From Octopus sinensis (Eukaryota), in NCBI RefSeq assembly GCF_006345805.1, contig NC_043009.1, forward strand, positions 10,416,001 through 10,480,000: DNA of 64,000 nucleotides, given 5' to 3'. Position numbers and translations under genes: made by a program. Each line of letters opens with the position of its first letter. Within the stretch, counting starts at the first letter, position 1. The notes under the pieces were generated by a model. The model worked only from the letters and a program-made list of their open reading frames with translations. It was not told where the DNA came from and did not search any database. Below, piece by piece: positions 2,952 to 46,886 of the stretch.

Positions 2952-3017
<66 letters not shown>

Positions 3018-3919: not shown

Positions 3920-3980
<61 letters not shown>

Positions 3981-4200
3981 GTATGTATGTTTGTATGGCT
4001 ATCTGTCTGTCTGTCTATGTATGCATGCATGTATGTATGTATGTATGTATGTATGTATGTATGTATGTATGTATATATCTATCTGTCTGTATGTATGCCT
4101 ATCTGTCTGTCTGTCTATGTATGTATATATGCATGTATGTATGTATGCATGTATGTATGCATGTATGTATGTATGTATGTATGTATCCATCTATCTATCT
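2112..4200. repeat. (TATG)n/(TATC)n compound microsatellite block containing a tandem duplication of about 970 bp
   Basis: The non-repetitive spacer TCAATTTATTTGTTTGTTTATCTCGCATGTAATTGTGC..AAGCTTGTAAGC occurs at about 2730-2950 and 3700-3920. Confidence 0.9.
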
Positions 4201-9137: not shown

Positions 9138-10670
9138 TGGCGGCATTTCGTCCGTCTTTACATTCTGAGTTCAAATTCCGCCGAAGTTGACTTTGCCTTT
9201 CAACCTTTCGGGTTCGATAAAGTAAGTACCAGTTGAACACTGGGGTGAATGTAATCAGCTTATCCACTCCCCCAAAATTGCTGGCCATGTACCAAAATTT
9301 GAAATCAATATTAGTGCTAGATAAGACAATGAGCTGACAAGGTCATTAGCACGCCGGATAAAATGCTTTCCGGCTTTTCGTCCGTCTTTACGTTCTGAGT
9401 TCAAATTCCGCTGACGTTGACTTTGCCATTCATTCTTTCGAGATCGATAAAATAAGTACCAGTTAAATACTGGCGTCGGTGTAATGGACTAATCCCTCCC
9501 CCGAACTTGCTGGCATTGTGTCAAAATTTGAAATCAGTATCGGTGCTAGATAAGGCGGCGGGCTGACGGAATCATTAGCATGCCGGGCAAAATGCTTTCT
9601 GGCAATTCGTCCGTCTTTACGTTTTGAGTTGAAATTCCACTGAGATCGATTTTGCCTTTCGTTCTTTCGGAATCGATAGAATAAATACCAGTTGTACACT
9701 GGGGTCGATGTAATTGACTTAGTTCCTGCCCCGAAATTACTACCCTCGTGCCAAAATTTAAAAATAATAATCAGTACTAGATAACCAGTAAATCTTCGTC
9801 TGGGTTTACTGTTTTGCGGTTCTAACGAGGAACGGATTTGATAAAGGGACTTTTCGTCTTATTTTTATGACTTCCTAACTGACAGCGGCAAGCTGGTAGA
9901 ATAATTAGCGCGAAAGATAAAATGTGTAGCGGTATTTCTTCCGGATCTTTATACTCGAGTTCAGATGCCACCGAGGCCGACCTTGTCTTTCATCCTTTTG
10001 TGCTCGGTAAAATAAGTGCCCGTTAAGTATAGAAGTCAATGTAATTGATTTACCATTCCTTTCAAAACTTCTGGCTTGAGCCCGAAATTAGAAAGGCCTA
10101 TTTTCTTATAGAAAAATGGTTAAACATCGAGCCTTAGATTTAATACTAAATCTGCTCGGACTTTACTTCTGAATTAGATAATGTCTTGATAAAAAAACAG
10201 AGATCTATCACAACTAATATAACGGATGGAACAAGGCGGCGAGCTGGCTGAATCGTTACAACGCCGGACAAAACGCTTAGCGGCATCTCGTCCGTCTTTA
10301 CGTTCTGAGTTCAAATTCCGCCGGGGCTGATTTGCCTTTCACCCTTTCAGGGTCGATAAAATATGTACAAGATTTGAGTACTGGGGTCAATGCAATCGAC
10401 TTAATACCCACCACCTCCAAAATTTCTGGCCTTGTACCAAAATTTGAAATCAGTATTGGTACTAGACAAGGAGGCGAGTGGCACAATCCTTAGCACCTGA
10501 ACAACATGCTTGCGGCAGTTTGTCCGTCTTTACATTCTGAGTTCAAATGCCGCCGAGATCGACGTTGCCTTTCCTCCTTTCGAGGTCGTTAAAATAAGCA
10601 TCAGTTAAGCTCCGGGGGAAAGAGTCAGGTAAACTTGCTGGCCTTGGGCCAAGATTTGAAACCAATATCT
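9138..10670 (+). mobile_element. Array of about 6 head-to-tail SINE-A copies
   Basis: Repeated GAGTTCAAATTCCGCC..CTTTGCC..TAAGTACCAG units with a recurring junction GAAATCARTATYRGTRCTAGAYAAG. Confidence 0.8.
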
Positions 10671-14640: not shown

Positions 14641-15303
14641 TCAGTTGTCACTGAAGTCTATAGGAATGGTCTTTTGTGTTTCTGATTTTTCACTACCTCT
14701 CGTTATTTTCAGAACCATTTCATTGATTTGTTTTGTAATTGCATTCCTAATATCACGATCGATAAACCAAAATGTTGGAATTATTCCGGCGCTGCATAAA
14801 GACAAATAGGAAAATATTTCTATAATCGCCCATAGTAAATTACTCTTGTTTTCAACTGAAGTCCTCATCAGATGCAAATGAAAGCATTTGAGAATAAATA
14901 CAGTTGATGCAAATATGCAGTTTGTAATTATACCTGCAATTAATGAGCTACGAATCAGCTGACGGTCGGCGTTCGTAAGCAGACGATACGACATTAAACC
15001 GCGGGATTGGAGTAAGCAGACGATCACAATCGTCGTACTGGTGGTTGTCATTAAGCTCAACACAAAAGTAAGCCACTGGAAACCTAAATTTGTCTCTTGA
15101 TTAAGGGTGAAGTCACATTCGTAATATATTTGACTGGAGTTGTTGTAAAAACCAAGGAAATATATGGGCATCACGGTGATAACTGTTCCTAACCATGGTA
15201 TGTATAGCAGAAGACTAGAACCAAAGTTATTCACTCTTTGTAAATAACGGTATGGATTGGTCGCCTGAAGAACTCGGTCGATGCTGATCGCAAACATATG
15301 AAA
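14641..15303 (-). CDS. Class A GPCR, coding exon 2 (end of TM3 to C-terminus; 220 aa + stop)
   Basis: Acceptor TTTTCATTCTATTTTCAG| (AG at 15305-15304), phase 0. Encodes FAISIDRV..NPYRY, TM4 IPWLG..VMP, ECL2 Cys (YYECDF), TM5-TM7 hydrophobic segments and helix 8-like DRDIRNAI. After splicing, C100 to R125 is exactly 25 residues (3.25 to 3.50). Confidence 0.9.
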   Translation of the reverse strand, partial: FHMFAISIDRVLQATNPYRYLQRVNNFGSSLLLYIPWLGTVITVMPIYFLGFYNNSSQIYYECDFTLNQETNLGFQWLTFVLSLMTTTSTTIVIVCLLQSRGLMSYRLLTNADRQLIRSSLIAGIITNCIFASTVFILKCFHLHLMRTSVENKSNLLWAIIEIFSYLSLCSAGIIPTFWFIDRDIRNAITKQINEMVLKITRGSEKSETQKTIPIDFSDN

Positions 15304-17139
15304 CTGAAAATAGAATGAAAACAAGAAAATGTAAAGATCAAAGAATTAAATTAAATGCTTTCTTCCGATTTAAATTTATTTCAACAGAAAGTACAAGACT
15401 ATCGATATGATAAATTATACATTAGTACAATATTCAATACGAAACAAGCATTATGCATTCATATATGCATACTTCTTTCTCCATTCTTTCCAAATTCCTA
15501 AACAAAGAAATACAGTCGGCCTATGACTAAAGACAAAAGCCACTTTCGAGGAAATTTTGACATCGTTGAACTAACAGACTTTATATGCTAAACTCTTTGC
15601 ATATATTCCCTTTTCCATTTTTGGAGTAAAACTACCGTTCCAGCCGCTATTCCTCTTTCATATATCTATATATATATATATATATATATATGCATGCACA
15701 ATCACGCGGGGACACACACACACACACGGACGCTCACATATGCAATCTTTCATTTACATACGGACTGATATATCAAAATGCTTATGACTTATCGTGGGAT
15801 ATATTGTCATGGATATAAATCTGAATATAACTGATCTTCATTCATTCGGCTTACGTTGTGAGATATCAGTTCAACCACCGTCTATCTGTTTTTTTATTAG
15901 TCCACCTTTCTAGCTATTGATGTATCTTTCCTTCCATCAGCTAATATAATATCTACAAAAAAAAAAAGCATATATCCAAATATATATAACAAATTATCTA
16001 CATATGAAGAGTATACGCCGACATTTAGAAGCAAAATAGTTATGGGCTTTATCTGTTGTACATCCGCCTGTGCTTCATAACTCAAATTTGATCTCGGATC
16101 CTTTGCTCATCCTGAAAGGCCATCCTCTGCTACTGGTTTTCTAATTAACGACACAAAATAAACCTCATCTCCAAAATTCTTACCTAAATTGTTACTGTAA
16201 TTTGGATTATTAATTTTCATACAAATTTATGTGAGAATTGTAAAGAGACATATAGATATGAAATGCAATCTAGTTTGCATTGAATATCTATGTAGTCACT
16301 TCTAAAATTGCGTGAAGTATGAAGGTCAAGAGGAAAATAAAATAAAATGTAGGAGACAAACAACAATAGACACAGAAAAGTGAGAATTCTGTACGAGCTT
16401 GAAACAGATGAGGTTCTTTAGAAATGAATTCCTTAGAAATTCGTGTCTGAAGATGGCTATGGTCGCATGCTGAGAACAATGAAGGTGTTTATCAGTTTCC
16501 AAGTTATGTCTATCTTCTGTTAAACATATCTGGAAATTCTGAATTCCGAATTCTAGCAAATGCCACACAATTCCTTTCTGTACTGGTGTTGCATGAATAT
16601 ATTTACTTGAACGAAATACAGAGCGGCGATTGCTTCCTTCACTTCAAGGAAAGAACTGAGATGTGATAACAATCTGTTGGGATCTGGAAACAGAATGCAT
16701 TAGATTTATACCACGGTGTTGGTAGGAGAAAGGAAATATTGCAAGGGTGAGGAAAAATATGAATATCTTGATTGTTGAAAAAAGATGGCACTTATAGAAG
16801 TTTCTCGGTTTCAGAAATTACAAGCAAGGCCTTTAGTAGAACCATTTAAGAGAACTAGTTACATTCAGACAATTCCAAATACTTAGCTGCTCAAAGTATA
16901 ACAATTCCAAGCCACAATCAACGTATCCCAGGAATGCTTCAGACGACCCCTCATTATTGATGATGATTTGGATAACTCTCAGATATGGATGCATGTAACT
17001 GCTACATCGTTTCCAGACCAAAATTAAGAAAAAATAGTCTTCCCTGAGTCACTCTGTGCTAAATAATAATATACATACATACATACATACATACATACAT
17101 ACATACATACATACATACATACATACATACATACACACA

Positions 17140-18200
17140 TGCAATACATGCATAACACTTACCTAGTCCCACTTGCGGCCCACACATCTCTTTCATCAGT
17201 GTTACAGTGTTTGGATACCATTGGTAAAGAAGCTTTCCTACTGTTAATCAAAAAGTCATCAATAGCAGATCTGACGTCATCATTACTGCGATACTGGTTT
17301 CCAGCCAAGTGTTTTTTCATATTGGGGAACAGATGATACTCAGATGGGGCCAAATCAGGAGAATAAGGAGGGGGTGATCAACCAGTTTAAATCCACAGTC
17401 ACGCACAGCAGCCGTTGAAAGCAAAGACTTGGTCTTCATAGACTTTCGTAACTGCCTCAGCAAGCTGGCAAAATACTCTCTATTGATGGTGTGGCCCTTT
17501 TGAAGTTATTCAATAAACGCAATGCCTTTTGCATCCAAAGAAACCGAGGCCGTCACCTTCCCTTGGCCTTCTTTGGAACAAGTGAGGAGGGATGTTTCCA
17601 CAGCATGGATTGTTTCTTTTTCTCTAGCACAAAGTGATGAAGTCAAGTCACGTCCTGGGTTAGGAAATGTTCATGGAAACTAGCTGGATCAGACTCAAAC
17701 AATGTCAGGATTTTTTCGTAATATGATCAGACTGGTGCGCTTTTGATCAGGTGTCAAAAGACGTGGCAGCCACTGAACAGAAACCTTCATGAAGCCAAAT
17801 TCCTTGTGCAGAATATCCTCAAATCTCTCACAGGATATTCTAATAGCATTGACTATCTGATTTATAGTCGATCGCCTGTCATCCATCACCATGTGGGAAA
17901 CACCAGTAATGCTTTTCTCGGTGGTGGCAGTTGCAGGATTTTCCTTTCTCCTCCTAAATTCAGCTGCTCACTTTTGCACTGTCGATAAAGCTGGAGTTTC
18001 ATCCTCTAATGTAGTAACCATGTCAGCATGAATATCCTTAGTGGCTAACCCCTTTCACTGCAGGTGCTTCACGACACCAAATTTTGTCGATTTTCAAGAG
18101 AAGTTGCTACTAGTTACTTCTGAAGTCTTCTTTGAACAGTCAGATATACTAGCATCATTCCTTCATAGTCGGCCAATGAACTTTTCAGCCCACCCTTGTA
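17140..18200 (-). mobile_element. Second mariner relic (irritans-like), one TIR retained
   Basis: Fragments VMDDRRSTINQIV..MKVSVQWLPRLLTPDQK, GKVTASVSLDAKGI..QKGHTINREY and APSEYHLFPNMKKHLAG. TIR-like TACAAGGGTGGGCTGAAAAGTTC starts at TA 18200-18199. The other end is lost next to a (TACA)n tract. Confidence 0.88.
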
Positions 18201-18249
18201 TACGCACACATTAACACATAAACATACATACACATCTATATCTATCTTT

Positions 18250-18780
18250 TATCTTTTACTTGTTTCAGTTATTAGACTGCGGTCATACTGGGGTACGCAC
18301 CACCTTGGGGGAATTTTAATCGAACTTCATTTTTAATCTTGATACCTATTCTATCAGTCGCTTTGGCTGAACTGCTAAATTACAGGGACGTAAGCACACT
18401 AACATAAGCGGAAAGTGTAACCTCTCGAAAGAGCTGTTCTTCACTCCTGCTCCAGGGTGTTGGCTGCGGGGTCACTCCGAAAAGCTCTATCTGCGACGAT
18501 TTCATCTCAATCGAAGGAGAGGGGCTTTCTCCGTCCGGGTTGCGGATCCGTGGAATAAACTGCCGGACGAGATAGTGAAGATGCCGACGACCGCTCGGTT
18601 CAAAGTCTCCCTTGACCACAAGTGGCCTGAACTCTTTACATAAACACCACCCTGTACATAACTCCATGTCCCCCTACATGGCCTTGCTTTTTGCTTTTTG
18701 AGCCAAAAAATTAACTAACTAACACCGATTGTCACATGGTGTGGGGGGAGAAACAGAGACACAAAGACTCACACACATAA

Positions 18781-18800
<20 letters not shown>
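18250..18800 (-). mobile_element. SINE-B 3' half, split by the CR1-like insertion
   Basis: TTTTACTTGTTTCAGT..CTATTCTATCAGTC..GGGACGTAA resumes after the insertion as CACCGATTGTCA..GAAACAGAGACAC. Confidence 0.75.
18405..18717 (+). mobile_element. 5'-truncated CR1-like LINE 3' end inserted into a SINE-B copy
   Basis: The plus frame (no ATG, so absent from the ORF track) reads ..LRGHSEKLYLRRFHLNRRRGAFSVRVADPWNKLPDEIVKMPTTARFKVSLD..* (stop 18641-18643). It has a (CTAA)n tail and a TSD ACTAACA at 18398-18404 and 18718-18724. Confidence 0.8.
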
Positions 18801-18816
<16 letters not shown>

Positions 18817-19359
18817 ATATGTAATTTCATTGGTAAATTTGACCTACGGTAGTATTTTCGGTACCTTGGCACATGAAGCCAGTGGAAGGGTTTTAATGTC
18901 ATTTTAACATTTAAATATTCTATATCGTTGAGGGCACAGACCTAGTGGTTAGGGTGTTGCGGTACGTTGTGTTTTTGCGCAAAACACTTCATTTCTCGTT
19001 CCTCTGAGATCACTTCGACACCTGGGGCGGGGTACACCTGGGCACGTACATCGTCTTCGATGGGAATGTCCATCATTAAACAATATTGGATCCTTTGGGT
19101 TTGGCTGCCAGCATCAATTTCTGTTCAAACTGATTTCATATTCAGTGTAATGATACACTTTTATAGGATAATGGATGGCGCGAAAATCATTTTCGCTATA
19201 AGTCAATAGATAAAGAGTTATTAGCAATTATAGCTTGAAATTTTTTGGTAATTTTAGCCAATCGTAAGCCACAGACACATTCATGCCTATTTCCATAGTA
19301 ACAAGCGGGAGCATGAGAACTCTTTTGTCTGCGAGAAAGCACGTGTTGACAAATATATT

Positions 19360-19476
19360 CCTTTCTACTCTAGGCACAAACCCGAAATTTTGGGGGAGGG
19401 GCCAGTACTTAATTTATGGACCCCGAAAGGATGAAAGGCAAAATTGACCTCGGCGGAATTTGAACTCGGAACGTAA
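19360..19476 (-). mobile_element. Truncated SINE-A with 16-bp TSD
   Basis: TGTTGACAAATATATT at 19344-19359 and 19477-19492. Confidence 0.8.
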
Positions 19477-19589
19477 TGTTGACAAATATATTGAAACCAG
19501 TTTTTAAAAAATGTTTCGACTGGAAATTTTACTGTTTGATTACGGCAGCAAGTACTGGTAACCTTGTTTCTATGATGGAGACACTAAGA

Positions 19590-20085
19590 ACAGAGTTTGC
19601 TAAAAATAACAGCTAAATAACCTTTTGGATAAATCGTTCAAGTTCGTACTATCACATTAAATGCATATTGAAAGCTTAAAACTACAAAATAATTTGTTTA
19701 ATCGTTTCTTTTTGTCATTGAGGTGGTTCTAAAAATAACAACTAAAAACGTTTTTGGATAAATCTTTTAAGTTCGTGCTATCACAATGCTTAAAATTACA
19801 AAAAACAACTTGCTTACACTTTCTTGACAACACGTGCTATTTTCCGGATATTGACGACAAAATGTGCGGCCACACACAAAATGACAGCTTCCAAATCCTG
19901 TTTTCTGACTGTGTGAAAATGATCAAACTTTAAACCTCTATAACTTTTTAAACAAATTTTTCTGGAAAAAGTGAAATAACTGCAGCAATTCAGCTTGGAA
20001 AAGTATATTAATGTTCCAAATTAAAAAATTTTCGATAAACTTTTTTGAAGTGCTACCAATCAAACCAAAAAGATCCACAATATTT
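19590..20085. repeat. Dispersed repeat family; related copies at about 25450-25750 and 27390-27720
   Basis: Shared CAGCTTCCAAATCCTG.TTTCTG (all three copies) and GATCAAACTTTAAACCTCT.TAAC (two copies); internal duplication of about 130 bp at about 19601 and 19731. Confidence 0.65.
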
Positions 20086-20089
20086 TATG

Positions 20090-20640
20090 AGGATGCATGG
20101 CCTAGTGGTTAGGATGTTGCACTCACAATTGCGAGATCGCGGTTTCAATTCTTAGACGGAGCAGTGTGTTGTTTCCTTGAGCAAAACACCTCATCTCATA
20201 TTATTCTGCCATCACATCGACACCTGATGTGTGGTACACTGTGCACCTGTCCAGGCAACGTTGATTTGATGGAGTGAGCTAGCTAATGTACAGCACATAC
20301 CTATTTCTTTATTACCCACAAGGGGACACAGAGAGGACAGACAAACGGATTAAGTCGATTATATCGACCCCAGTGCGTAACTGGTACTTAACGACCCCGA
20401 AAGGATGAAAGGCAAAGTCGACCTCGGCCGAATTTGAACGTAACGGCAGACGAAATACGGCTACGCATTTCGCCTGGCGTGCTAACCTTTCTGCCAGCTC
20501 GCCGCCTTTGTACAAAAAAGTATGTACAGCACATACCTTTGATCACTATAAACAAATCATTTGTGTAGGTCGTTCGGAAAAAAGTTGAACGCTCATACAT
20601 TCTCTTCGAAGTGGGAGTCCGCCATTTAGCAATTAAAATA
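20090..20640 (+). mobile_element. SINE-D (tRNA head TGGCCTAGTGGTTAGG..TCCTTGAGCAAAACAC) with a nested minus-strand SINE-A (20303-20521)
   Basis: 17-bp TSD ATGTACAGCACATACCT at 20286-20302 and 20522-20538. A second, degraded SINE-D lies at about 18945-19110. Confidence 0.75.
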
Positions 20641-20874
20641 GCAATTTATCTTGATCACTCATCGTCCATCTCCCCAAACTCATAATCGTACCTGATGGCT
20701 ACGTCTTAAAATGTAAAACATATAACACAGCTCATTTACATAATAGTATGCAGCTGAAGGCCATCCCAGCAATAATTAATGGACTATCGAGTATATAGGT
20801 GTGGATATACGAATGTATTGGTGGCTTTCGTTATTTGAAATGAATTAATCGACAGAAATGACCTTTGCCGTGTT

Positions 20875-21044
20875 GGAGTGGCTGTGTGGCAAGTAGCTTG
20901 CTCACCAGCCACATGGTTCCGGGTTCAGTCCCACTGCGTGGCACCTTGGGCAAGTGTCTTCTATTATAGCCTCGGGCCGACCAAAGCCTTGGATTTGGTA
21001 GACGGAAACTGAAAGAAGCCCGTCGTATATATGTATATATATAT

Positions 21045-21112
<68 letters not shown>

Positions 21113-21330
21113 GTGTGGTGTGTGTGTGTGTTTGCGTTTCTCCCAACATCGCTTGACAACCATTGCTGGTGTGTTTATGTCCCCGTAAATTAGCGGTTCA
21201 GCAAAAGAGACCGATAGAATAAGTACTAGGCTTACAAAGAATAAGTCCTGGGGTCGATTTGCTTGACTAAAGGTAGTGCTCCAGCATGGCCACAGTCAAA
21301 ATGACTGAAACAAGTAAAAGAATAAAAGAG
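20875..21330 (+). mobile_element. SINE-B, near full length
   Basis: Head, body, internal microsatellite and AAAAGAG tail are all present. Confidence 0.9.
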
Positions 21331-21785
21331 CAAGTGTTAGCTAAACATTATTTTATTGCACAAGTAAGGGAGACTACTTCGAATGTTTAAAGCCAATAAT
21401 CACTGTTTGCAATAGAAACGGTTATTGTGATTGGCCAGGTCTTTGCAACATGAGTTCAAATCTTGCCGAAGTCAACTTTGCTTTTTATATTTCTGATGTT
21501 AAACTAAAAGACTAGTGTGATTTAATCGACTACATTTTCCCCTCAAATTCCTTCTCGTGACTATACAAGAAATTATTGTTAGCAAATACAACAGCCAGCG
21601 TCCTCTTGTTTATATTGGAATTTTTGATGAATTTCAACCTAAATCTTATTTAAGATCTTCTCCTATGTTTTGTTTATTGGGAAGTAATTATTTATAAAAT
21701 TACAAGAAATATTATGCCGTATAATAATTCATTTTCTAAGCTTGTGTATTTTTTTTTTGGCATTAATAGCAGTAGTAGTAGTAGC

Positions 21786-21823
<38 letters not shown>

Positions 21824-22872
21824 CTGTTATTGTTGTATAGTTGCTGGCTGAACCGTAAGCAGTAGGAGTAACACGATGTATGTACGCATGTCTGAGTGGA
21901 AGACAGCATTCAGATAAGTTTTTGACACCAGGTCAAAGAGTACAAATTTATCAAACTACATCGCGCAACGCTCTGTTGTGAGATGTTTGGCCTCCTGAGT
22001 GAGAGTGGTTGTGGTGGTGGTGGTGGCGGTGGTGGTGGAGGTTGTAGAGTGAAAAAGAGAAAAGGAGACGGGGTGGGTTAGAAAGAACTGATCGTCCATG
22101 CGTGAAGTTAACATTCAAGAAATTTATGATTCCTTTTTGTGATGAAGGTCGGTAGAAGAAGAGAAATGGCGAAGAGTATAAAGAGAATAAAGAATGCGTT
22201 ATTAGGAGATAGAAGGGGAATGTGTGTTAGAGAGACTGAAGAAAAAGTTTAAGATGTAACCTTGGTTGCTAATTGTCACACACACACACACACATTCCAT
22301 GTCCACTTATGCTGTGGAAGAATTTCTATAGCACGTCAATGGCACACGTCATCACTGTCGTATGTGCGCTGATAATTGCGACAAGGTAAATTGGAATTTG
22401 TGTTATAAACAAGTAATGTATTAATTATTTCTCATACTTGTGTCGATCACTGGACTGTAGCCATCCTGGGGCACCACTTTGAAAAGTTTAGTCGAATAAA
22501 TCGACTCCGGTACGTTTTGTTTTTTTTTTTGCTTTTTGTTATTTTTTAAAGTCTGGTACCTATTCTATAAATCACTTTTTATATAACCACTCAGTTACGG
22601 GGATATAAACAAACCAACACCAGTTGTCAAGCGATCGTTGGGGACAAACACGTACACAAAACACAGAGAAACACACACGCGCACACAGCCACATAAAGAC
22701 ACACGTGCTTTTCTTAGACTTTTTCCTCTTTCCTTTCTCTCACGAGAGGTCATGCTCGAAATGTCACACCCTCTTTTCTCCATCATAAACTTTATCTGAG
22801 CATCAATCTAATACATTCATCGTGTACGTCCCTTTCCCTTTTGTTCTTTTCCTGTTTTCGTTTTCTATTTGC

Positions 22873-22908
<36 letters not shown>

Positions 22909-22914
<6 letters not shown>

Positions 22915-23033
22915 ATCACGTGCTCGCTTGGCCAGCGGGGTGGCGTCATTTGAAGGCTAAAACAATGCAAAGCGCATTGTGACCAGCGATGTGTAGCAAC
23001 ATCTGATGGCCTGGTCTGTCACGTGACCGCGTG
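22909..23033 (+). mobile_element. 3' part of SINE-C flanked on both sides by CACGTGATCACGTG-type repeats
   Basis: Matches about 36335-36446 (CTCGCTT.GCCAGCGGGGTGGCGTCATTTGAAGGC..ACATCTGATGGCCTGG). Confidence 0.8.
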
Positions 23034-23093
23034 TGTACCGTTGGCGATTTTTTTCCCTCCGTCTTCCCTTCTCTGGATCTTTCCTTTTCCTAT

Positions 23094-23128
23094 GTTTCTG
23101 ACGAAGAGCTCCACTCGAAACGTAAAAC
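23094..23128 (+). ncRNA. Minimal type I hammerhead ribozyme motif (Penelope-like, dimer-dependent type)
   Basis: GTTT-CTGACGA-A-GAG(CTCCA)CTC-GAAA-C-GTA-AAAC: core boxes present, stem II GAG/CTC, palindromic ACGT stem III, stem I GTTT/AAAC. Confidence 0.7.
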
Positions 23129-23231
23129 CCTCCTTCTTTCCTTCCTTCCTGAGCGTCCAATAATACTATATTTGTTCCACGTCCTCGCGTTGTGTTTTCT
23201 CTTTGTGTTTTCATGTTTGGATTAACTTTAC

Positions 23232-23560
23232 ATATATATATAATACAAAATGGGACAAGAACGCAAAACATCCAGATAGACGATACAAAAAAAACACGGA
23301 CGGGTCATTCGAAGCCTTTAATCTTCAGTCAAGAACCGGATCATCCTCGCAATTTCGGCTGATTAATCTTGAGATTGCTCCAATCTGGCCAGCCCCAAGG
23401 AAAAACTAAGCTAAGAGCATTAGATTCCTCGGAAAAAGGATCGAATGTGTACGAAACAAGGACAGAAGAACGGACGATGTTACACGAATATAAATACAAA
23501 AAAAAATAATAATACGAATATAAATGCAAAAAACAATAATAATAACAGGACACAACAACA
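23232..23560. repeat. Dispersed repeat; second copy at about 41500-41690
   Basis: Shared CAAAATGGG..GAACGCAAAACATCC..GATAGACGATACAA..CTTCAGTCAAG..CTTGAGATTGCTCCAATCTGGCCAG. Family not identified. Confidence 0.75.
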
Positions 23561-23692
23561 GGCGTCTTTCGACCAGAGACAAATTGAACTCAGCTGGTGT
23601 ATTGAGTGAGAATTAAGCCTTACTGCAGACGAAAACAACGATGTTAACGAGCCCGTAGTCCGACGCAAAAGGGCTACTAGTCGGCCAGCGGG

Positions 23693-24262
23693 CGCATGCA
23701 TGTTAATACTCTTAAGTTATTACACCTGGAAAAGTACAACACAAGATTTCTACAGCAGAATTTGTCTAATTTGTCACCTCTAAAGGAAACTAAAAAGTTC
23801 TTACAATTAAAATTCTACTCCACAAAAATATTGCAGCCGAGAATAGCATTTTAAAAATTTACAATGTTTTATTAAAACAAAAATTCTAAAAACATTACTG
23901 AGTTTTTCCCAAAATAAGCCCCTCCGATTTTAAGCCTATGGGCTTATATTCAGAAACTCTTTTCATATATAGCCCCAGTAAGTTATATTAATTTCAGAAA
24001 AAAAAATTTAATCAGAATTATTTAAGTCTGTATTTAAAACTATAGGCTTAGTTTTGGAAAAAACAGTATTTTAAAAATTAAATAAAATAAAATTAATTTT
24101 TTAAAAATACAGTATAATTCGCCTAATTCGTCATTCCTAGGAAAAAATTGAAAGTGACGAATTAAGTGAAGTAACGAATTAACCAAACAGATAATTTTTT
24201 TATGTGGAAGAATTGACTGAGCATATGGTTGATTTGAAACCATCTAATGATCGTTCTACTGC

Positions 24263-24307
<45 letters not shown>

Positions 24308-24734
24308 GATTATTATTTTGTAATGGGATTTCAACTCAAGTGAAAAAAAAAATCTTGTGCAATATTATTTACAATTTCATATTTTATTGTTTGTACTTGA
24401 TACAGCTAAATAAAATAACTACTTTAATTGTATATTTCAGAAGATATGATTAAAAAATTATTTTTGTGTTTAAATTTATTTTTGATTTATTTTTTACCAT
24501 GTTTTAAATGATTTACTTGTTTTTAGATTCTCACAATAAATAAAATAAATTATCTCAAATTTACCTAATATATTTCAATTTTTAAAATGCTATTCTCAGC
24601 TGCAATGGTTTAAGTATAGTAGAATTTTAATTCTAAGTACTTTTTAGAGGTGACGAATTAGGCAAATTCTTTTGTAGAAATCTTCTTCTGTACTTTTCCA
24701 GGTGTAATAACTTAAGAATATTAACATGCATGCG
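23693..24734. mobile_element. Foldback element / long inverted repeat (about 170-bp arms)
   Basis: CGCATGCATGTTAATA.TCTTAAGTTATTACACCTGGAAAAGTAC...GAGAATAGCATTTTAAAAATT at about 23693-23860 and its reverse complement at about 24575-24734. The interior is very AT-rich; no TSD was found. Confidence 0.8.
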
Positions 24735-26606
24735 TCTGCATTTTTCATTGTTATTCAAAATTTTTTTTCCTGGCAATGCAATAAAACTAATAAATATTTG
24801 AATAAAATGAAACCTGCCTGTATATTTATTTAGAATTAATAATGTTTTTAGAATAATGAGAAATGTAATTATGACATTTTTATATCGAAACAAAGTGCAT
24901 AATAGGAACGCGCCATAAATGAAAGAGCAAAAATTCATTATGAAAAATAATTTTCTATATAATAATGAATATTAATGCAATGCTAATTTTATGATAAAAT
25001 CAAGAAATAAATTAGCTATATCTATACATAGTAAGAAGAGCTAGCTATAAGAGGCATGAGTATATATAAAAATCCAAAGAGAGCCAATGCATCCACCGTA
25101 AGGCAAGAGGGGCCACCTGCCCTTGTTATGGCAAAGTTAGTCGAAATTCATGTAAAAGGAAAATAATGCCTGCAATTCTGTTATTGTTCTTGTCAACTTG
25201 CCTAAAAATTAAAAAAAATTTGAATCCTGCGACTCTGAAAATCCAATCATACTATCTGAAAGCAAAAATCTTGTTAATTTACCCTAAGAAATTATAATCT
25301 AAATTCTGATACTCTTAATATTTAAATTTCATTTTTCTGGATTTGGTTTGCAAGATTCTTTATATGAGTTCGTGTGTTGAAGCATATTCTGTTGTGTCTG
25401 GGGAGAGTCATTTTCTTTTTGTGCCTTTTAATGTAACACACTCACCGGTAAAGTTTCCACTTATTATTTTTATTTTCCTAAAATTTTCGTTGCGTCTTGC
25501 AACCTTTTCAATAGTTTTGACCCTGTCCGTTATTTACCCTCTTAATATTTAATATTTAAAAGCAAACAAAAAACGTATTAAAAGTTCAGAAGCTCTTACA
25601 ACTTTGGTCGTCGTTATGCTTTGCTTTCGTTTGTTTAGTAAAAGTTCCCCCTCATATAATGATTTTGCTTTCATTTTGTGATAGACAACTGTCATGCAGA
25701 AAATGCCAGCTTCCAAATCCTGTTTTCTGATTCGATGAACCTCAGTAACATTTTTCTGCAATAAGTATGTATCTGTGTGTGACTGTTTATTTACGATGGA
25801 CAGCAAAAAAGAGTCCACTTGTCATCAATTGTTGTCAACGTACCCCTCTCTTCTTAAAGCTACATGTTCGTCACACTCACCTTTGTTGCTCTTCATGGGC
25901 CTTTTAAAAGTTACTTACGTGCATGTGTGTGCGTGTGTGTGTATTTACGGAAGTATGCATGCAGCGTCGCGTGTATATCCCTGAATTCGATTTCAGGCGT
26001 TATTCTCCTCTTTTTGACCTTACATACTTGAAATCTCAACTTTTTCTCTACTGAACTAAATTTCAAACTGTTGGGCTCAAAATTTAGCTTAGGAGGTGAC
26101 CGATCTAAAAAATGTATAAGCATGTATAATTTGATAAAAATGTATAATTTGATAACTGAATTAGCGACAAAGTCTAGAAGTGGACGCGAGTGAGTGACTT
26201 TAAGAATATTATTCACACACTTCCGTGTGTGAATGATTTTTATTGCAATACAGTGTATTCTATGAATATGAGGTATGTCTTTACAAGATGCCTAAATACT
26301 GAATCGAATCAAATATTTTGCAATGTTGCTTTCCAATTCTGGCAGAAGACCATCAGATCCGGAGAGGAGGGAAGTCGATTATATCGACTTCAGTGCTCAG
26401 CTGATACTCATTTTATCGAGTACCGAAAAGCTAAAAGCAAAGTAGCATTGCGCATAAATGCAAACTTGTTACCAGTTCAAATATGCTTGGGGCATATTCG
26501 AACCTGTAAAAATACCCATTACTGTATTTTGTCATGGAGAACATTTCCCGCTGTAGACAAATAAGGTGTAAACACATTCAATCAGTTCGAAGTGCCCCTT
26601 AACTAG

Positions 26607-26644
<38 letters not shown>

Positions 26645-26655
<11 letters not shown>

Positions 26656-27108
26656 ACGCTTCCTTCAGTTTCTGTCGAGCAAATCCATTCACAAAACTTT
26701 GGTCAACTCTAGACCATAAAAGAAGACCCTTGCCCCAATGTGTCGCGCAGTTGGACCGAAAATGGAACATGTAGTTTGGGAAGCCAGTTTATTTTTTTAT
26801 CACACAGCCACGCCTACGCCTAAAAATGGATAGTTGGTTAGCCGCGACGACAAGCATAACATTCAGTGATTTGACCAACTGAGTAACTCCTCAGAATTCC
26901 ACAGACATATCACCCTTAAATTATATAACAATTCAGATAGAAAAAAATAATAATTTCAGTAAGGCGTAGGAGTGGCTGTGTGGTTCCGGGTTCAGTCCCA
27001 CTGCGTGGCCCCTTGAGCAAGTGTCTTCTACTATAGCCTCAGGCTGAACAATGCCTTGTGAGTGGATTTGGTAGACGGAAACTGAAAGAAGCCTGTCGTA
27101 TATATATG

Positions 27109-27154
<46 letters not shown>

Positions 27155-27340
27155 TCCCCCCAAAATCACTTGACAACCGATGCTGGTGTATTTACGTCCT
27201 CGTAACTTAGCAGTTCGGTAAAAGAGACCGATAGAATAAGTACTGGGCTTAAAAAGAAAAAGTCCTGATGTCGATTTGCTCGACTAAATGCGGTGCTCCA
27301 GCATGGCCACAGTCAAATGACTGAAACAAGTAAAAGAGTA
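26645..27340. mobile_element. Head-to-head pair of SINE-B copies (minus 26645-26820, plus 26963-27340)
   Basis: Opposite orientations about 140 bp apart. Confidence 0.75.
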
Positions 27341-28251
27341 AAGTGTACTCCCAGATTTTTTTTCTTTTGGTTTTTGCATAATCGTATGAATTCGCGTGTG
27401 TGGAATACAAATTAACAAAAATTTTCTGCAAATTCCATAAAATAAAATTCTGCCAATATTTTATTTGTTTACAGACAACACGTGGTGTCACGTGCAAAAC
27501 GACAGCTTCCAAATCCTGCTTTCTGTCTGGGTAAAACCGATCAAACTTTAAACCTCTGTAACTTTTTTTTTAAAAAATTCTGGGTAAAGCTAAACATCCT
27601 CCGAGATTCAGCGTGGAAAATTATATCAATACGCCGAATTTTAAAATTTTCACTAAACTTTAAAATTTCTACAAGTGCAACCAAACAGAAAAGAAATGCA
27701 CAACACTTTCTGGATACCCAGATATTAGAATATGTCATAGTAGTAGTAGAAGTAGCACTGAATATAAATACAACTCGTGTTTTTGTTGTAAACATTAAAT
27801 GTTCTTCCCTGATGTAAGACTAATTCCCATGGGTTTATTTTTGTTCTTCATTTCATCAGATGATAGCTTCTATTTGTGAATTATTGTATTCTTTCTCATG
27901 GTTATAGAACTCAATCTTACATGTTTTATTCTTGCTGCGACAAGCATATATATTGTTTCAGCTGAAAATAAATCTCATCATTGTATGTTTTCCGTTATAC
28001 AGACAGGGATTAGACGGAGCTTATTTTGCCATTAGGCTGTCGAATTACTTGATCAATCATTCATTCTAACTTTCCTACGTGACAAAAAGAATCGCTCTTT
28101 ATCGACCATAGTGTAAAGAATGGTAAATTTGTACTTTATCAATAAATTGTATATATTAAGTGAAAGGTTTTGTTGTCGTTAACTCTGCCCGCTACTCTAC
28201 TTGAATTTTGGTCTGCTCCAGCCAATTGGTGGTCATTTGACAATAGAAATG

Positions 28252-30448
28252 AGTTGTGAAACGAAAAGCGTAGGGCAAAATACCTAGTACTATTTGTTCC
28301 TACTGTCTGCTCTATAAACTCAAATCCCACTGAGATCGAAGTCACCTTTCAGGTCGGTGGTAAACTTAGAGAGTAGACTTACTCAGTCACCTTGTTTCAA
28401 CATTAATAGCTGGTCCGCTTGTACTTTTAGCGAAGTTCGTTTTGTTCGTTTTGATTTCATTTCTATTGTCGAATATAATTTATACCCACCCCTGTAGGTG
28501 TATATACATGTATGTGTAGACGACTCAGTTGCGATGTTTAAATATAAAACTGAATAACCATGTAGGCGCAGGCGTGGTTGGGTGGTAAGAAGGTTGCTTC
28601 CCAGCTACATGATTCCGGGTTCAGTCCTTCTACGAGGCACCTTCTTCTATAGCTTTGGGCCGGCCAAAGCTTTGCGAGCAGATCTGATAGACGGAAACTG
28701 AACGAAGTCCATTGTATATCGATGTGTGTGTGTGTCTTTGAGTCTGTGTTTGTCACACCAGCCCACCGCTTAACAACCGGTATAGGTGTGTTTATGTCCC
28801 CGTAACTTAGCGGTTCGGCAAAGAGAGCGATAGAATAAGCACCAGGTTGCAGAAAAAAACAAAACAAAAAGCACTGGGGCCAATTCATTCGACTAAAAAT
28901 TCTTCAAGGCGGTGCCCCTGCATGGCCGTAGTTAAATGACTTAAAACAAGTGAAAGACTAGTTTCGATCTACTCATCTTCGGGCTCAGCATGCTTCCACT
29001 GTACCACTCAGCATTCTTCCACTCAGAGAGTTTTTAAATAAATGTATAATTGAGTCAATAATATTGAAAAGGTTGCAAGACGCAACGAAAATTTTAGGGA
29101 AAGAAAATTAAGGAATAAGTGGAAATTTTACCGGTGATTGTGTTAAATTATAAGGCACAAAGAGAAAATGACTCTCCTCGGACTCTCAAACAGAATATGC
29201 TTCAACACACGAACTCACATAAAGAATCTTGCAAAGAAAATCCAAAAGCGAAATATAATGGATTATTTCCTTTATTGTCTGTTTTTGGTCTCATTGTCTG
29301 TTTTTGGTCTATTACATCATCCATCTTATGTTATTTCTTTATTTCTATGCTTTGGACTCTTTCAAATGAACGAAGCATAGCAACAACACAATGCATGTAA
29401 CACTGCGAGGTTAATTAACTTGCTGAAAGGCAGCATTTCACTCTGCCAATATTCTGAGAGTCACATTTGACAAAATCACATACATAGATCTATGAGTTTC
29501 AAATGTGTTTTGGGCGTCTACTCATTTGTCATTTTCAGATCAACCAGGAGCCAATCAATTGTATAAATGTCTCCCCAGTGTAGCACAGCAAACGAGCTTG
29601 CTAGTCTTGTTACTATATGGCATGTCACCTGTTACTGTTTTGACTGTAGATGTGTTCATAATAATTTACATTGACAAATCATTTCAAATTTTGAAAATAA
29701 TGTTTAGCAGTCTTAAAACATATCATTACGAAATATATTTCACAGAACTTTCCCCAAACTAGAAACCTTTAATTAACTAATATCCTGGCCTAAAAAAATT
29801 ATCCAGGAAGAATCATTTTAGTAATATCAATATATGCAATCACCATAAACGTCTACACATGAACCTTAAAACATGTTCATCCTTACGAGATAGAAAAGCA
29901 ACTCAACATACATTTCCATCTTCAGCTGCCTAATGGGTGTCACTTGTATTAGGTCAGGAAGAGAAAGCAATTCCCATGATCCTTCATAGTTTTAGCGTCT
30001 CGGGCGAAATGCGTTGCCGTATTTCGTCTGTCGTTACATTCTGAGTTCAAATTCCGCCGAGATCGACTTTGCCTTTCATCCTTTCGGGGTCGATAAATTA
30101 AGTACCAGTTATGCACTGGGGTCGATGTAATCGACTTAATCCGTTTGTTTGTCCCCTCTATGTTTAGCCCCTTGTGGGTAATAAAGAAACATGTATTGAT
30201 GGGAAGAAGTGTGGAAAGTTATTCTAAATCCAGAGATCCGTCCAGATGCTATCAACAAAACGAACTTCGCTAAAAGTACGAGCGGACCAGCCGTTAATGT
30301 TGAAACAAGGTGACTGAGTAAGTCTACTCTCCAAATTTACCACTGACCTGAAAAGTGATTTCGATCTCAATGGGATTTGAGTTTATAGAGCTGACAGTAG
30401 GAACAAATAGTACTAGGTATTTTGCCCTACGCTTTTCGTTTCACAACT
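28252..30448. mobile_element. Foldback element / long inverted repeat (about 195-bp arms) carrying nested SINEs
   Basis: 28252-28446 is a highly similar reverse complement of 30254-30448. The interior contains a SINE-B (28565-28955) and a SINE-A (29993-30190); no transposase was seen. Confidence 0.85.
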
Positions 30449-32887
30449 ACATTGTTCAAGTTTCGTTCCCGCTGCTCAGCACTTCGGGCAAGTATCCCAT
30501 ACATTGAAAACCTCGATATATCAGATCAGCTGATCAACTATAAGACAGTCATCAGGTGGGCCATGTTCCTATTACAACCGACTCCATTCTAAACGACAGT
30601 TAATTGGCAAAATGCAGTTATTACTGTTCATTTAACCCCAAATCTTGGCAACCGTGAGAACCACGTCTTTATCCATGATTTTATTTAGGGCATAATGCAT
30701 CTTATACTGCATTATTCAATGCGCTTTTCCCGTTGTTCATGCGCTATTGTTGTTTTGTAACATGAGTAAAATTATAATTAAAAAACGTTCCAACTGTGGA
30801 CATTCCATCCTTTACTCAAACTGGGTGTCAGAGAGTACATTATATAATGCATTATTCCTCCATTCTTTAAGGCGTTGATATTATTTGAAGGGTATTTGGA
30901 TGCTTCAGCTTCTTGTAGCAAGTTGATAGACCATCTAAAACCTCCTTCATTGGTTTAAAACGTTAGCATTTGGATTTGAGAGAAATTTCGCGGCTGTTTT
31001 CAGTAGGCCGAGCTACTACGCAAGGTATTCCATCCACGTGGTCTCAGATTCCAAAAGACAGGACGCAATTCCGTGGTAACACGCCAAGGCGCTTTAATTC
31101 AGTGTATAAGTTTGGGTTCCGTAAAAGCTATTAAATACTTTATCAAGAATCGTATTAATGGCATTGACACAGAATATTCGAAGACGATGGAGGAAAACGA
31201 TGGATTCGTAGAATCGTTAAAATGTCCAACAAATATCTGACGATAGCTATTCCGACCCTTTGTGTCCTGTGCTCAAGTACTGTCGAAACCAAGTTTACCT
31301 TTTACCTCTCTAGGGGGTCCGTAAATAAAGTACTAGTCAAATATTGTTGTTGGGTGGGGCAGTAAATATTTTATCACTTTCTCAGAGAGTCGGGGAGCGT
31401 CATTCCCGATGCCAACTTTCTCCAAGAAATCGAGGAGAGTTAACTGATAATAATTAGGTTTTATGTATTTAGAATTGTGTCAAATAGATTAATATTTAGT
31501 AAGAATGGGAGAGGAAGACATTCATTAAATTGATTTAAATACTGGTGTGTGGTATACAAATTATTAATTTAGTTGAGAAGGAATCATATTTGTTGTTGTG
31601 GAGGACCAGGTCAGCTCTAGTGAAATTGATCTGTAAAATGCAGGTAGTCGACCGAAAACTAAGTTTTATAAAAAGATATAGTTTAGATATATGGAAGCAA
31701 AGTCCAATGACCACACATGTAATATATCGTAAGGGATGCAGTGACAGTCTGCACCTGTTCTCTCTTCACAGGCATTAGTAGATTCTACCAGTAACCAATG
31801 CGAAGTTGGATAAAGTAGACAGAAACAGAACACCGTAGGTGACGTTCCTCTACATTTCTCATTGGTGGTGTGCATATCAGCATAATATTTTGCACTAATG
31901 CATCTACAGATGCACTTATTTTATTTTACTTTATTTTATTTTTGCTTGCTCGGATTAAGAGGGACAAACAAATTGGTGTGATTACAGTGTATTGGGATGA
32001 ACGCACATGTAGCGACAGGGAGTCAGAGCATCCTTCCTCAGCAGTGGTAATGAAAAGAAAGGAAGAAATCATTGTTTTTAACTATGAGATGACTTTACAG
32101 CGGCAATCCGAACAAATTCACAAATTTTGTTGGTTAAACACTAATATTGTAGTACCGCCTGAATAAATCGGAACTTGGTACTATCATTCGAATTTATTCG
32201 AGATGATGCCAATGCAATTTGCTTAATAGCATTTTCGCATGGAATGAAGCCAGATCATGCATTTTCTTCACTGAAAGCTCATCGTTAATGGTATAAGGAT
32301 CTCCTCACAAACTGTTCAACATTTATATCACAAATAATAAATTGGGATGCTCAAACATCTCCTAAGTCAAATAATGTCAAGAAGTATTCTATCACAGAAT
32401 AACTCACAACTTCAAAAGCATACCAGCAATTCTAACGATTCCAATAAGACCGATAACAGAGATAACAAGCAGACTGTAGATTCTGTCATATCATATGTTT
32501 AACTTAAGGTTGGCTGTATGTTTAACTATGTATGTTGCTGCATGTTGCGTTAGTTCGTCTAGCCACTATATATTTTCTGGTTGAACTTCCACTTTGCAGC
32601 GACTTGGGCAGGTGACTTCCACCAGTCACGAAGCAATGTGAGTGAAAGTTGGTGGGTAGTAATGCTGCTTCGATTTAGGTGCACAATTCCTGTTCTTGGA
32701 TGGCAGACACAATCTGTCGTGGTGTTTAATCCTTTACCGTGGTTCCTTGGAGACCTTTAACAGAGTCCACACTGCGCAGCCATTAAAATGAATAAACCAT
32801 TAAAAATGAGTAAGCCATTAAAAATGAAACAAAAAATAAATAAATATAAGTAAAGCATCAATGGTTGACTTGTTCACACGGCAATAG

Positions 32888-33150
32888 ATATGTATGTGGT
32901 TAAGAAGCTCGCTTTGCAACGGCATGGTTTCAGGTTCAGTCCTTCTGCGTAGCACCTTGGACAATGTCTCCTACTATTGCCCTTGGCCTTCATTTGACAA
33001 CAAGTGATGGTTTCTTTACTTAACAGTTCGGCAAGAGATACCGATAGAATGAGTACCAGGCTAAAAATAAGCACTAGGGTTCGATTTGTTCGACTAAACC
33101 CTTTAAGCGGTGCGCTAGCATGACCGCAGTCCAGTGACTGAAACAAAAAA
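32888..33150 (+). mobile_element. Internally deleted SINE-B followed by a 300-bp (TG)n tract
   Basis: Head GTGGTTAAGAAGCT.. and tail CTAGCATGACCGCAGTCCAGTGACTGAAACAA. Confidence 0.75.
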
Positions 33151-33253
33151 AATATACATACATACATACATGTGTGTGTGTGTGTGTGGTGTGTGTGTGT
33201 GTGCGTGTGTGTGTGTGTGTGTGTGTGCGTGTGTGTGTGTGTGCGTGCGTGTG

Positions 33254-33298
<45 letters not shown>

Positions 33299-33495
33299 TG
33301 TGTGTGCGTGTGTGTGTGTGCGTGTGTGGTGTGCGTGTGTGTGTGTGCGTGTGTGTGTGTGCGTGTGTGTGCGCGCGTGCGTGTGTGTGTGTGCGTGTGT
33401 GTGTGTGTGTGCGTGTGTGTGTGTGCGTGTGTGTGTGCGTGTGTGTGCGTGTGTGTGTGTGTGTGTGTGTAAAATCATATAAAACCGTTACTTAC

Positions 33496-33840
33496 CTGAA
33501 ATGCGATATCAAAGCCGACCAGTACAGTGTAATAAACCTTACAGAAAGCAACTCCGATGTTCCACCGGAAGTAATAGAGATGAGCAAACACCAAGTGTCC
33601 GAATATACCCCAGAGAGAACTACTGATGCAGATGTTCAATAACAGTTTATCTAAGGGTCTAGTGTCTCCCTTCTTTATCTTTCGAAGCAGTACAACGACG
33701 AGGAGTAGGTTGGGCAACAGCACTGTAAGGCTAATAGTAATGTATAGTAAGTAATAGTAGAGTTCTTGCTGGTATTTCGATGATTTGTAGGTTCGGTAGA
33801 AATTGCGTAGTCCGTAGATGGTGTAGTCGTACAATTCCAT
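33496..33840 (-). CDS. Class A GPCR, coding exon 1 (N-terminus, TM1, TM2, ECL1, first part of TM3; 115 aa)
   Basis: ATG at 33840 has an in-frame TAA two codons upstream. TM1 is [23 protein letters not shown] (N1.50), TM2 is [21 protein letters not shown]1/TM3 is WNIGVAFC (C3.25). The exon ends at a strong donor CAG|GTAAGT (GT at 33495-33494), phase 0. Confidence 0.9.
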
Positions 33841-33849
33841 GATTTAGTA

Positions 33850-34589: not shown

Positions 34590-34754
34590 TCCCGCTTATA
34601 ACGAAGATCAAACTGTCTTTTCATCACAACTTACTAAGGAATTTATGAAAATTATCTCCCCTTCTCTTTGGAATTGCTAACACGAGTTCTCTATTTTCCG
34701 ACTCCCCCAAGAAAGAAAAGCCTAAGAACTTCAGAATTTATTATGTAAAGTCAT

Positions 34755-35455
34755 ACCATACCTACCTACCTACCTACCTACCTACCTACCTGTTTATATC
34801 TGTCTGTCTATATCTACCTATCTACCTACGTACGTACCTACGTACCTACCTGCCTACGTACCTACCTACATACCTGTCTATATCTGTCTGTCTATATCTA
34901 CCTATCTACCTACCTACCTACCAAACTACCTGTCTATATCTGTCTGTCTATATCTACCTATCTACCTACGTACGTACGTACCTACCTACCTACCTACCTA
35001 CCAACCTACCTACCTACCTACCTACCTATCTACCTACCTACCTACCTACCTGTTATATCTGTCTGTCTATATCTACCTATCTGCCTACGTACGTACCTAC
35101 GTACCTACCTACCTACGTACCTACCTACATACCTGTCTATATCTGTCTGTCTATATCTGCCTATCTACCTACCTACCTACCTACCTGTTTATATCTGTCT
35201 GTCTATATCTACCTATCTACCTACGTACGTACCTACGTACCTACCTACCTACGTACCTACCTACATACCTGTCTATATCTGTCTGTCTATATCTACCTAT
35301 CTACCTACCTACCTACCTACCTACCTACCTGTCTATATCTGTCTGTCTATATCTACCTATCTGCCTACGTACGTACGTACGTACCTACCTACCTACCTAC
35401 CAACCTACCTGTCTATATCTGTCTGTCTATATCTACCTACCTACCTACCTACCTA
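34755..35455. repeat. (CTAC)n-based compound minisatellite with higher-order units of about 135 bp
   Basis: Recurrent module CTGT(T/C)TATATCTGTCTGTCTATATCT; units start at about 34790, 35050 and 35185. Confidence 0.9.
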
Positions 35456-46598: not shown

Positions 46599-46636
<38 letters not shown>

Positions 46637-46886
46637 ATGTATGTATGTATGTATGTATGTATGTATGCATGTATGCATATATGTATATATGTATGTATGT
46701 ATGTGAGTGTGTGTGTACGTACATACGTATGTATGTATGTATGTATGTATGTATGTGTATATGTATGTATGTGCGTATGTATGTGTGAATGAATGTGTGT
46801 ATTATGTATGTGTGTATGTATGCACGTACGTATGTATGTATGTATATATGTATGTATGCATGTATGTATGTATGTATGTATGTATG

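Follow-up and report, generated by a model that had tools for sequence, protein, structure and literature searches.

A slowly evolving orphan receptor of Octopus sinensis: a class A fold with few of the typical activation motifs

Closest relatives, gene structure and orthologues

Among the class A (rhodopsin-like) receptors, those for biogenic amines possess an Asp at position 3.32 as counter-ion and, in the case of catecholamines, Ser residues at 5.42/5.43/5.46; melatonin receptors have NRY for DRY and NAxxY in the seventh transmembrane helix (TM7), and in some chemoreceptor families class A motifs are typically lost. The chemosensory class A expansions of lophotrochozoans are described as lineage-specific, with no one-to-one orthologues, a highly variable pocket and many recent, often tandem, paralogues under relaxed or positive selection, and are reduced in cephalopods (PMC11886862). 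The gene described here lies on the minus strand at positions 14641–33840 of a 64,000-nucleotide stretch of Octopus sinensis DNA (contig NC_043009.1, positions 10,416,001 to 10,480,000; this whole stretch is the window referred to below). It contrasts with most of the orphan receptors that have lost their switch motifs, which are fast-evolving, multi-copy chemoreceptors: it is a slowly evolving, single-copy orphan receptor and almost certainly a real, functional protein-coding gene.

As to the closest described proteins, TAAR1, 5-HT2A/2B, H2R, beta1AR and SSTR2 share with the product of this gene the class A fold and a TM1–TM5 similarity of ~37 bits but are only 13–18% identical to it, and the gene differs from the solved aminergic receptors in having neither Asp 3.32 nor the microswitch motifs (generic numbering being derived here from a 33-sequence alignment with the nearest relatives). 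Uncharacterised lophotrochozoan receptors having NPxxW in TM7 (for example, Owenia fusiformis CAH1797106.1, Liolophura sinensis XP_064608801.1 and Mactra antiquata KAL4227731.1) have in common with it the Cys pair of TM3 and extracellular loop 2 (ECL2), DR(L/F/V), W7.53 and the helix-8 pattern D/N-x-x-(I/V)-R, whereas their identity is 16–21% and most of them keep D2.50, D3.32, P5.50, WxP and N7.49. The nearest full-length relative (72 bits, 23–25% identity) is an Argonauta hians protein named “histamine H2 receptor-like”, hereafter P0023, whose O. sinensis counterpart is an intronless 382-aa open reading frame (ORF) at 1297–2445 of the minus strand of C4:132424876-132428700. P0023 resembles the present receptor in the segment G(L/I)xSYxL(L/V)xxxDxxxIR of intracellular loop 3 (ICL3) and TM6, in the helix-8 sequence DRDIRNA and in W7.53; unlike it, P0023 keeps D2.50, N7.49 (NPLAW) and a Pro at 6.50 (RFPW), has no TM3 intron and possesses longer N- and C-termini. 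A further paralogue, P0044, is restricted to decapods and is represented by the Logan RNA-seq contigs L018–L020 and by ENA ERZ21867824 ctg114842l (L017, 9971–10609). Like the gene, it has a phase-0 intron in TM3 directly behind the aligned Gln, with the acceptor TTTTGCAG/GGA at the exact aligned position, and shares with it the ICL1/TM2 motif (K/R)P(M/L)(H/D)KL(V/L)L, but differs from it in having SIG for DRY, a length of 296 aa and a score of 22.7 bits, below the cut-off, against the Pfam profile 7tm_1. P0044 is transcribed, is without an octopus orthologue and, when searched against the O. sinensis genome, found as its sole match exon 1 of the present gene.

The coding exons are contained in two stop-free frames of the minus strand, read in the window at 33475–33843 (122 aa) and 14641–15345 (234 aa). 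Exon 1 (33496–33840; 345 nt, 115 codons, the last residue being Q115 at 3.40) encodes the N-terminus, TM1, TM2, ECL1 and the first half of TM3, and exon 2 (14641–15303; 663 nt, 220 codons followed by the stop TGA at 14643–14641) the remainder of TM3 with its DRV sequence, TM4 to TM7 and helix 8. The start ATG (33840–33838), with an A at −3 and a G at +4, is placed within exon 1 because an in-frame TAA (33844–33846) is found upstream, two codons 5′ of it, and the aligned Met is the start of the Sepia and Argonauta proteins too. The splice donor GTAAGT (33490–33495) follows the CAG of Q115, whose last base, 33496, is the final base of the exon; the phase-0 intron (15304–33495; 18,192 nt), full of microsatellite and SINE-like repeats (SINE, short interspersed element), ends with a polypyrimidine tract and the acceptor TTTTCAG (15304–15330), kept in the orthologues, so that 15303 is the first base of exon 2. 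The joined coding sequence of 1,008 nt is translated into 335 aa with no internal stop, and the distance between C100 and R125 is exactly 25 residues, i.e., the 3.25-to-3.50 spacing.

At the base composition of the window a chance run of at least 234 stop-free codons is expected ~0.0005 times and one of at least 122 codons ~1.5 times; since a frame of the size of exon 1 is thus to be expected about 1.5 times per window, this exon is convincing through homology only. The spliced protein scores 49.3 bits against 7tm_1 (PF00001; gathering cut-off 30.5), the match being one stretch that crosses the junction (residues 44–285, profile positions 2–254 of 260), while exon 2 taken singly reaches 29.4 bits and exon 1 has no match. 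The join therefore improves the match and, together with the sequence and the spacing, confirms that the two frames splice in phase 0 into a 335-residue protein, as the original prediction had it.

In all genomes examined the intron interrupts the frame in phase 0 behind the same Gln codon, has CAG/GTRAGT at the donor and YAG at the acceptor, and measures 18.2 kb in O. sinensis, 13.2 kb in O. bimaculoides, 21.1 kb in O. vulgaris, 1.5 kb in Argonauta hians and ~65 kb in the decapod assembly ERZ21867824, in which both exons stand on one contig of 117,875 bp. The O. sinensis intron is colinear with that of O. bimaculoides (83–93% nucleotide identity), exon 1 is present in O. bimaculoides and Argonauta as well, and exon 2 is 87.5% identical at the nucleotide level in another octopod (contigs L005/L006). 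The O. vulgaris exons (1501–1845 and 22952–23614 of the OX597826.1 extract, L022) are open and full length, with nucleotide identities to O. sinensis of 98.0% for exon 1 and 99.85% for exon 2. The protein annotated in that species, CAI9731585.1 (“dopamine receptor 3-like”), has only 201 aa, W152–S286 having been removed as an intron inside exon 2; its shortness is an annotation artefact caused by this spurious intron and the gene is not disabled.

Evidence of transcription comes from cuttlefish, whose protein is indexed in 55 blocks of the collection searched, the 24 with the longest contigs having been read. These RNA-seq contigs of 4.5–5 kb contain an uninterrupted ORF of 363 aa preceded by 549–983 bases (six loci) and followed by ~3 kb, and they match the two genomic exons as separate blocks, which indicates that they are spliced mRNAs. 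One of the runs, SRR23936177, falls among the accession numbers spanned by PRJNA947123, an RNA-seq project on Sepia esculenta larvae, to which it is assigned by inference. The short Logan contigs L005/L006, the only ones found with an octopod copy, are genomic, being colinear with the intron and the 3′ flank at 87.5% identity, and thus give no information on octopus splicing.

The ratios of nonsynonymous to synonymous substitution rates (dN/dS), calculated by the Nei–Gojobori method on codon alignments, are 0.093 between O. sinensis and O. bimaculoides (dS 0.12), 0.075 between O. sinensis and Argonauta (with a dS of 1.5, close to saturation), 0.12 between exon 2 and that of another octopod and 0.069 between the Sepia mRNA and another decapod, whose genomic coding sequence was assembled for the calculation one codon short (the terminal Gln of exon 1), an omission expected to have a small effect. 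Across no fewer than five octopod and three decapod sequence sets the gene is intact and strong purifying selection acts on it, and the selection that had previously been surmised from the open frame finds support in these values of 0.07–0.12.

These data also bear on the possibility that the two frames are a chance pair of ORFs or a decaying pseudogene, a view that could appeal to the repeat-rich, AT-rich DNA, to the ~1.5 runs of exon 1 length expected per window and to the 201-aa O. vulgaris model. It is refuted by the 7tm_1 match spanning the junction, by the spliced cuttlefish mRNA, by dN/dS values far below 1 and by the intact orthologues present in every genome examined, including the full-length exons of O. 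vulgaris, so that its probability is as good as nil.

When the O. sinensis genome (2.72 Gb in 13,516 contigs) was searched, the two exons of the gene were recovered along with two distant intronless receptors of 25% identity, which implies that the gene is single copy in this species and belongs to no array. Of the 1.84 billion representative proteins scanned exhaustively with an HMMER profile, three matched above 350 bits, all of them cephalopod orthologues; P0023 came next at 72 bits, and the rest were generic class A receptors forming a flat tail that reached no more than 54 bits. The named members of this tail are uncharacterised receptors of the lophotrochozoans Owenia, Liolophura, Mactra and Arion. 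Word-indexed searches started from the single protein, from an orthologue profile and from the Sepia orthologue returned the same five cephalopod clusters only, and yielded no orthologue from squid, Nautilus or any non-cephalopod. In the maximum-likelihood tree the four orthologues form a clade with 100% support and a stem of ~1.7 substitutions per site, placed inside a poorly resolved group of lophotrochozoan receptors; the apparent sister, P0044, is itself a long branch, so that its kinship rests on the shared intron position and on the reciprocal genome search rather than on the tree. The suggestion of a lineage-specific cephalopod orphan is thus borne out in the searched data, in which no characterised one-to-one orthologue was found.

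Receptor class, database names and conserved residues

A structural model predicted by AlphaFold2 from four orthologues only was unusable, having a mean predicted local distance difference test (pLDDT) score of 45.7, and the 33-sequence alignment was used instead. The resulting model (pLDDT 82.2, predicted template-modelling score 0.80) displays seven transmembrane helices (residues 22–56, 62–90, 97–130, 141–165, 184–214, 226–263 and 270–296) and a helix 8 (298–321). Foldseek found 976 matches to this model in the PDB at E ≤ 0.001, and all 50 matches listed are class A receptors, with a probability of 1.0, target-normalised TM-scores of 0.47–0.79 and 13–18% identity, spread over the aminergic, peptide, opioid and adenosine receptors. 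Likewise, the sequence matches among solved structures (5-HT2B, H2R, 5-HT2A, TAAR and SSTR2) score ~32–38 bits each and none of them stands out. The protein is a class A receptor which has the anchor residues, the profile match and the fold of the class and lacks its microswitches, features that are usual in the class without being required for belonging to it.

Several residues characteristic of the class are kept and invariant, namely N44 (1.50), W93xxG96, C100 (3.25), D124–R125 (3.49–3.50), W152 (4.50), C178 (ECL2), F195 (5.47), F246 (6.44) and P291 (7.50), the anchors N44, R125, W152, P291 and the pair C100/C178 being identical in all four orthologues. Elsewhere the activation network is replaced: position 2.50 is S74 (G in Sepia), 3.32 is L107 (M in Sepia), 3.51 is an invariant V126, giving DRV, 5.50 is S198 and 5.58 is T206 (respectively C and F in the other orthologues), 6.48 is V250 (I/M in the others), 6.50 is I252 (V in the others), and 7.49 and 7.53 are the invariant I290 and W294. 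CWxP is accordingly substituted by T249-V250-F251-I252 and NPxxY by I290-P-T-F-W294. All the motif calls made originally were reproduced in the 33-sequence alignment, to which the loss of Y5.58 must be added. Since W7.53, as in NPxxW, is the majority state in the nearest relatives, this residue is inherited and does not represent a special loss; furthermore, the odd residues have been maintained in both octopus and cuttlefish, which points to a fixed state and not to an ongoing decay.

The distribution of identity between octopus and Sepia along the protein is markedly uneven. It amounts to 90% in ICL2 (NPYRYLQRVN) and 91% in ICL3 (SRGLxSYRLLT), to 40–59% in the transmembrane helices, to 33% in ECL2, where Sepia has a 26-residue insertion, to 21% in helix 8, to 7% in the C-terminus and to 0% in ECL3. 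Loops of the ICL2 and ICL3 type are those that, in class A receptors, touch G proteins, kinases and arrestins; that they are the most constrained parts of the protein, and that R3.50 is kept, argues for a conserved intracellular partner. In addition, the helices contain invariant polar residues, D111 (3.36), K254 (6.52), H257 (6.55), H259 (6.57), H82 (2.58), H87 (2.63) and Y281 (7.40), whose counterparts in other class A receptors form the wall of the ligand pocket.

The N-terminal motif Y-x-x-Y-G-L-R-N-x-Y (residues 6–15, encoded at ~33796–33825 of the minus strand) is invariant in octopus, Argonauta and Sepia and lies in a region of the model with a pLDDT below 50.

The gene had been described as hidden, which is wrong, inasmuch as an identical product is present in RefSeq and the orthologues of O. 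bimaculoides, Argonauta and Sepia are annotated. Indeed, the O. sinensis entry XP_029644310.1 / XP_036364046.1, “melatonin receptor type 1B-like”, shows 100% identity along the full 335 aa; the O. bimaculoides protein XP_014785749.1, “dopamine receptor 3”, is 97% identical and belongs to the same cluster as the O. sinensis entry; Argonauta hians GAB1601707.1 is 81% identical, and an identity of ~45% is found for Sepia pharaonis CAE1306458.1 and for unnamed cuttlefish proteins. The same orthologue is thus named differently from species to species. No citation of any of these accessions was found in the literature searched, the surveys of G-protein-coupled receptors by Ritschard 2019 and Nath 2025 do not single out the gene, and the literature on “melatonin receptor” and octopus offered nothing relevant.

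If these names were taken at face value, the protein would be a genuine receptor for melatonin or for dopamine or another biogenic amine, as its automatic names propose and as could be argued from the fact that its best sequence matches in the PDB are aminergic receptors and MT2. However, position 3.32 is occupied by Leu or Met instead of Asp, the TM5 serines are missing (F190-Q-W-L-T194), and DRV and IIPTFW stand where NRY and NAxxY would be expected in a melatonin receptor. The match to MT2 (E = 8.5e-6, over TM1–TM5) is no better than those to 5-HT2 or TAAR1, the identity to any solved receptor does not rise above the 13–18% range, and the names vary by species for one and the same orthologue. 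Lacking both Asp 3.32 and the TM5 serines, the protein cannot have a classical amine site, and a melatonin or amine receptor is extremely improbable. To judge from these defining residues, and in particular because position 3.32 is Leu, the melatonin and dopamine names are automatic best-hit labels and are wrong; they could lead transcriptome studies to count the gene within the melatonin or dopamine pathways.

Proposed function and competing explanations

The reading that we favor, with a probability of about 0.6, is that the protein would be a ligand-responsive receptor that addresses a conserved intracellular transducer and works without the canonical set of switches. The family may have originated, along a long branch, among lophotrochozoan orphan receptors, which mostly carry NPxxW, and then have frozen. 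A conserved, probably endogenous and non-amine ligand would enter the helical pocket, where D111, K254, H257, H259, H82, H87 and Y281 could be its contacts, and the signal would reach the conserved intracellular partner through R125 (3.50) and the nearly invariant ICL2 sequence NPYRYLQRVN and ICL3/TM6 segment SRGLxSYRLLTxxDRxxIRSSL. The relay would run without the Na+-site D2.50, P5.50, Y5.58, the CWxP toggle, N7.49 and Y7.53. An endogenous or invariant ligand fits the conserved pocket and the one-to-one orthology better than would variable environmental chemicals.

The latter consideration concerns also the possibility that the gene encodes a chemosensory receptor with which suckers, skin or olfactory organ would sense the surroundings. 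Motif loss of the kind seen in some chemoreceptor families would agree with such a role, and the paralogue P0023 weakly matches (24.4 bits) the profile of the nematode Srsx chemoreceptors; but the gene occurs once in the genome, outside any tandem array, is matched one-to-one by its octopod and decapod orthologues, evolves with a dN/dS of 0.07–0.12 and keeps its pocket positions invariant, and the cuttlefish transcript occurs in what appear to be whole-larva libraries, hence beyond sensory tissue alone. A chemosensory function is therefore very unlikely, and the link to fast-evolving chemosensory receptors drawn in the original prediction is contradicted by the copy number, the one-to-one orthologues, the slow evolution and the invariance of motifs and pocket.

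More weight must be given to the proposal that the receptor does not signal or does so independently of a ligand, acting as a decoy or scavenger, in the manner of the atypical ACKR-like receptors, which bind a ligand and activate no G protein, as a scaffold or chaperone of some other membrane protein, or as a constitutively active protein whose output is set by its level. Nearly the whole activation network is absent and stays absent across coleoids, and the decapod-only P0044, with its SIG for DRY and its 22.7 bits against 7tm_1, has degenerated further and yet is transcribed. Nevertheless, D3.49–R3.50 is kept, no part of the protein is better conserved than the transducer-contacting loops ICL2 and ICL3, invariant polar residues occupy the classical ligand-contact positions 3.36, 6.52 and 6.55, and W7.53 is common in the nearest relatives, whose motifs are otherwise normal; on balance a non-signalling or ligand-independent receptor is unlikely.

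A variant in which the coleoids would have innovated a non-canonical relay built on D111–K254, as an invariant and presumably buried pair, and on a ring of histidines, making the protein a putative sensor of protons, metal ions or small anions instead of a receptor for peptides or amines, is quite unlikely. The four invariant histidines (H82, H87, H257 and H259) are located where TM2 and TM6 approach the extracellular side, and the D111–K254 contact itself is hypothetical, being suggested by the sequence.

A number of points weigh against the favored reading as a whole. That D111, K254 and the histidines contribute to a pocket would follow from numbering derived from an alignment, and the ligand response and the coupling to G protein or arrestin are inferred from the protein sequence. 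The joint loss of D2.50, Y5.58, W6.48, P6.50, N7.49 and Y7.53 could mean that there is no classical G-protein activation. The restriction of the family to coleoids holds as far as the searched data show and is provisional, the coverage of Nautilus and squid being uncertain. Finally, of the splicing that had been anticipated at the junction, that of the cuttlefish mRNA was seen and no octopus transcript or junction read was found.

The octopod–decapod split dates back a few hundred million years, and a single gene has remained almost unchanged since then, its intracellular loops being the most conserved parts. It provides a clean case, supplied by nature, for asking to what extent a rhodopsin-type receptor can dispense with the canonical activation network and still work, and is a candidate component of a coleoid-specific signalling.

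Minor features of the intron and of the window

Inside the intron, at 25579–25674 of the minus strand, there is a remnant of an alternative first exon, a 32-codon ORF (MKAKSLYEGELLLNKRKQSITTTKVVRASELL) sharing 84% identity with the exon of this kind in A0A0L8IA32, an isoform model of O. bimaculoides; an isoform of this type would encode a protein without the portion from TM1 to the middle of TM3. The donor of this exon reads TTA/GTAAGT in O. bimaculoides and TTA/ATACGT in O. sinensis, and because the GT is absent the alternative exon is probably unusable in the latter species. The intron also contains a (TG)n microsatellite (33171–33470) which begins ~25 nt past the donor of exon 1.

The other long ORFs of the window are translations of microsatellites or remnants of repeats, and none of them matches a Pfam family above threshold. 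Most of these “ORFs” (MYVC/HTYI repeats) are produced by tetranucleotide microsatellites, (TGTA)n/(ATAC)n and (TACC)n, of up to 2 kb, located at 2111–4186, 34754–35455, 46602–47026 and 48761–49686. A unit of 180–230 bp with GTTCAAATTCCGC, tandem or dispersed (9141–9784, 40395–40811 and 57161–57648), looks like a tRNA-derived SINE, and related translated fragments (…NWYLIYRPRKDERQS…) are repeated on both strands. A series of ORFs of 130–180 aa at 58502–61914 of the minus strand, with a sub-threshold match to zf-RVT (19.7 bits; cut-off 27.5), has the appearance of retrotransposon reverse transcriptase remnants.

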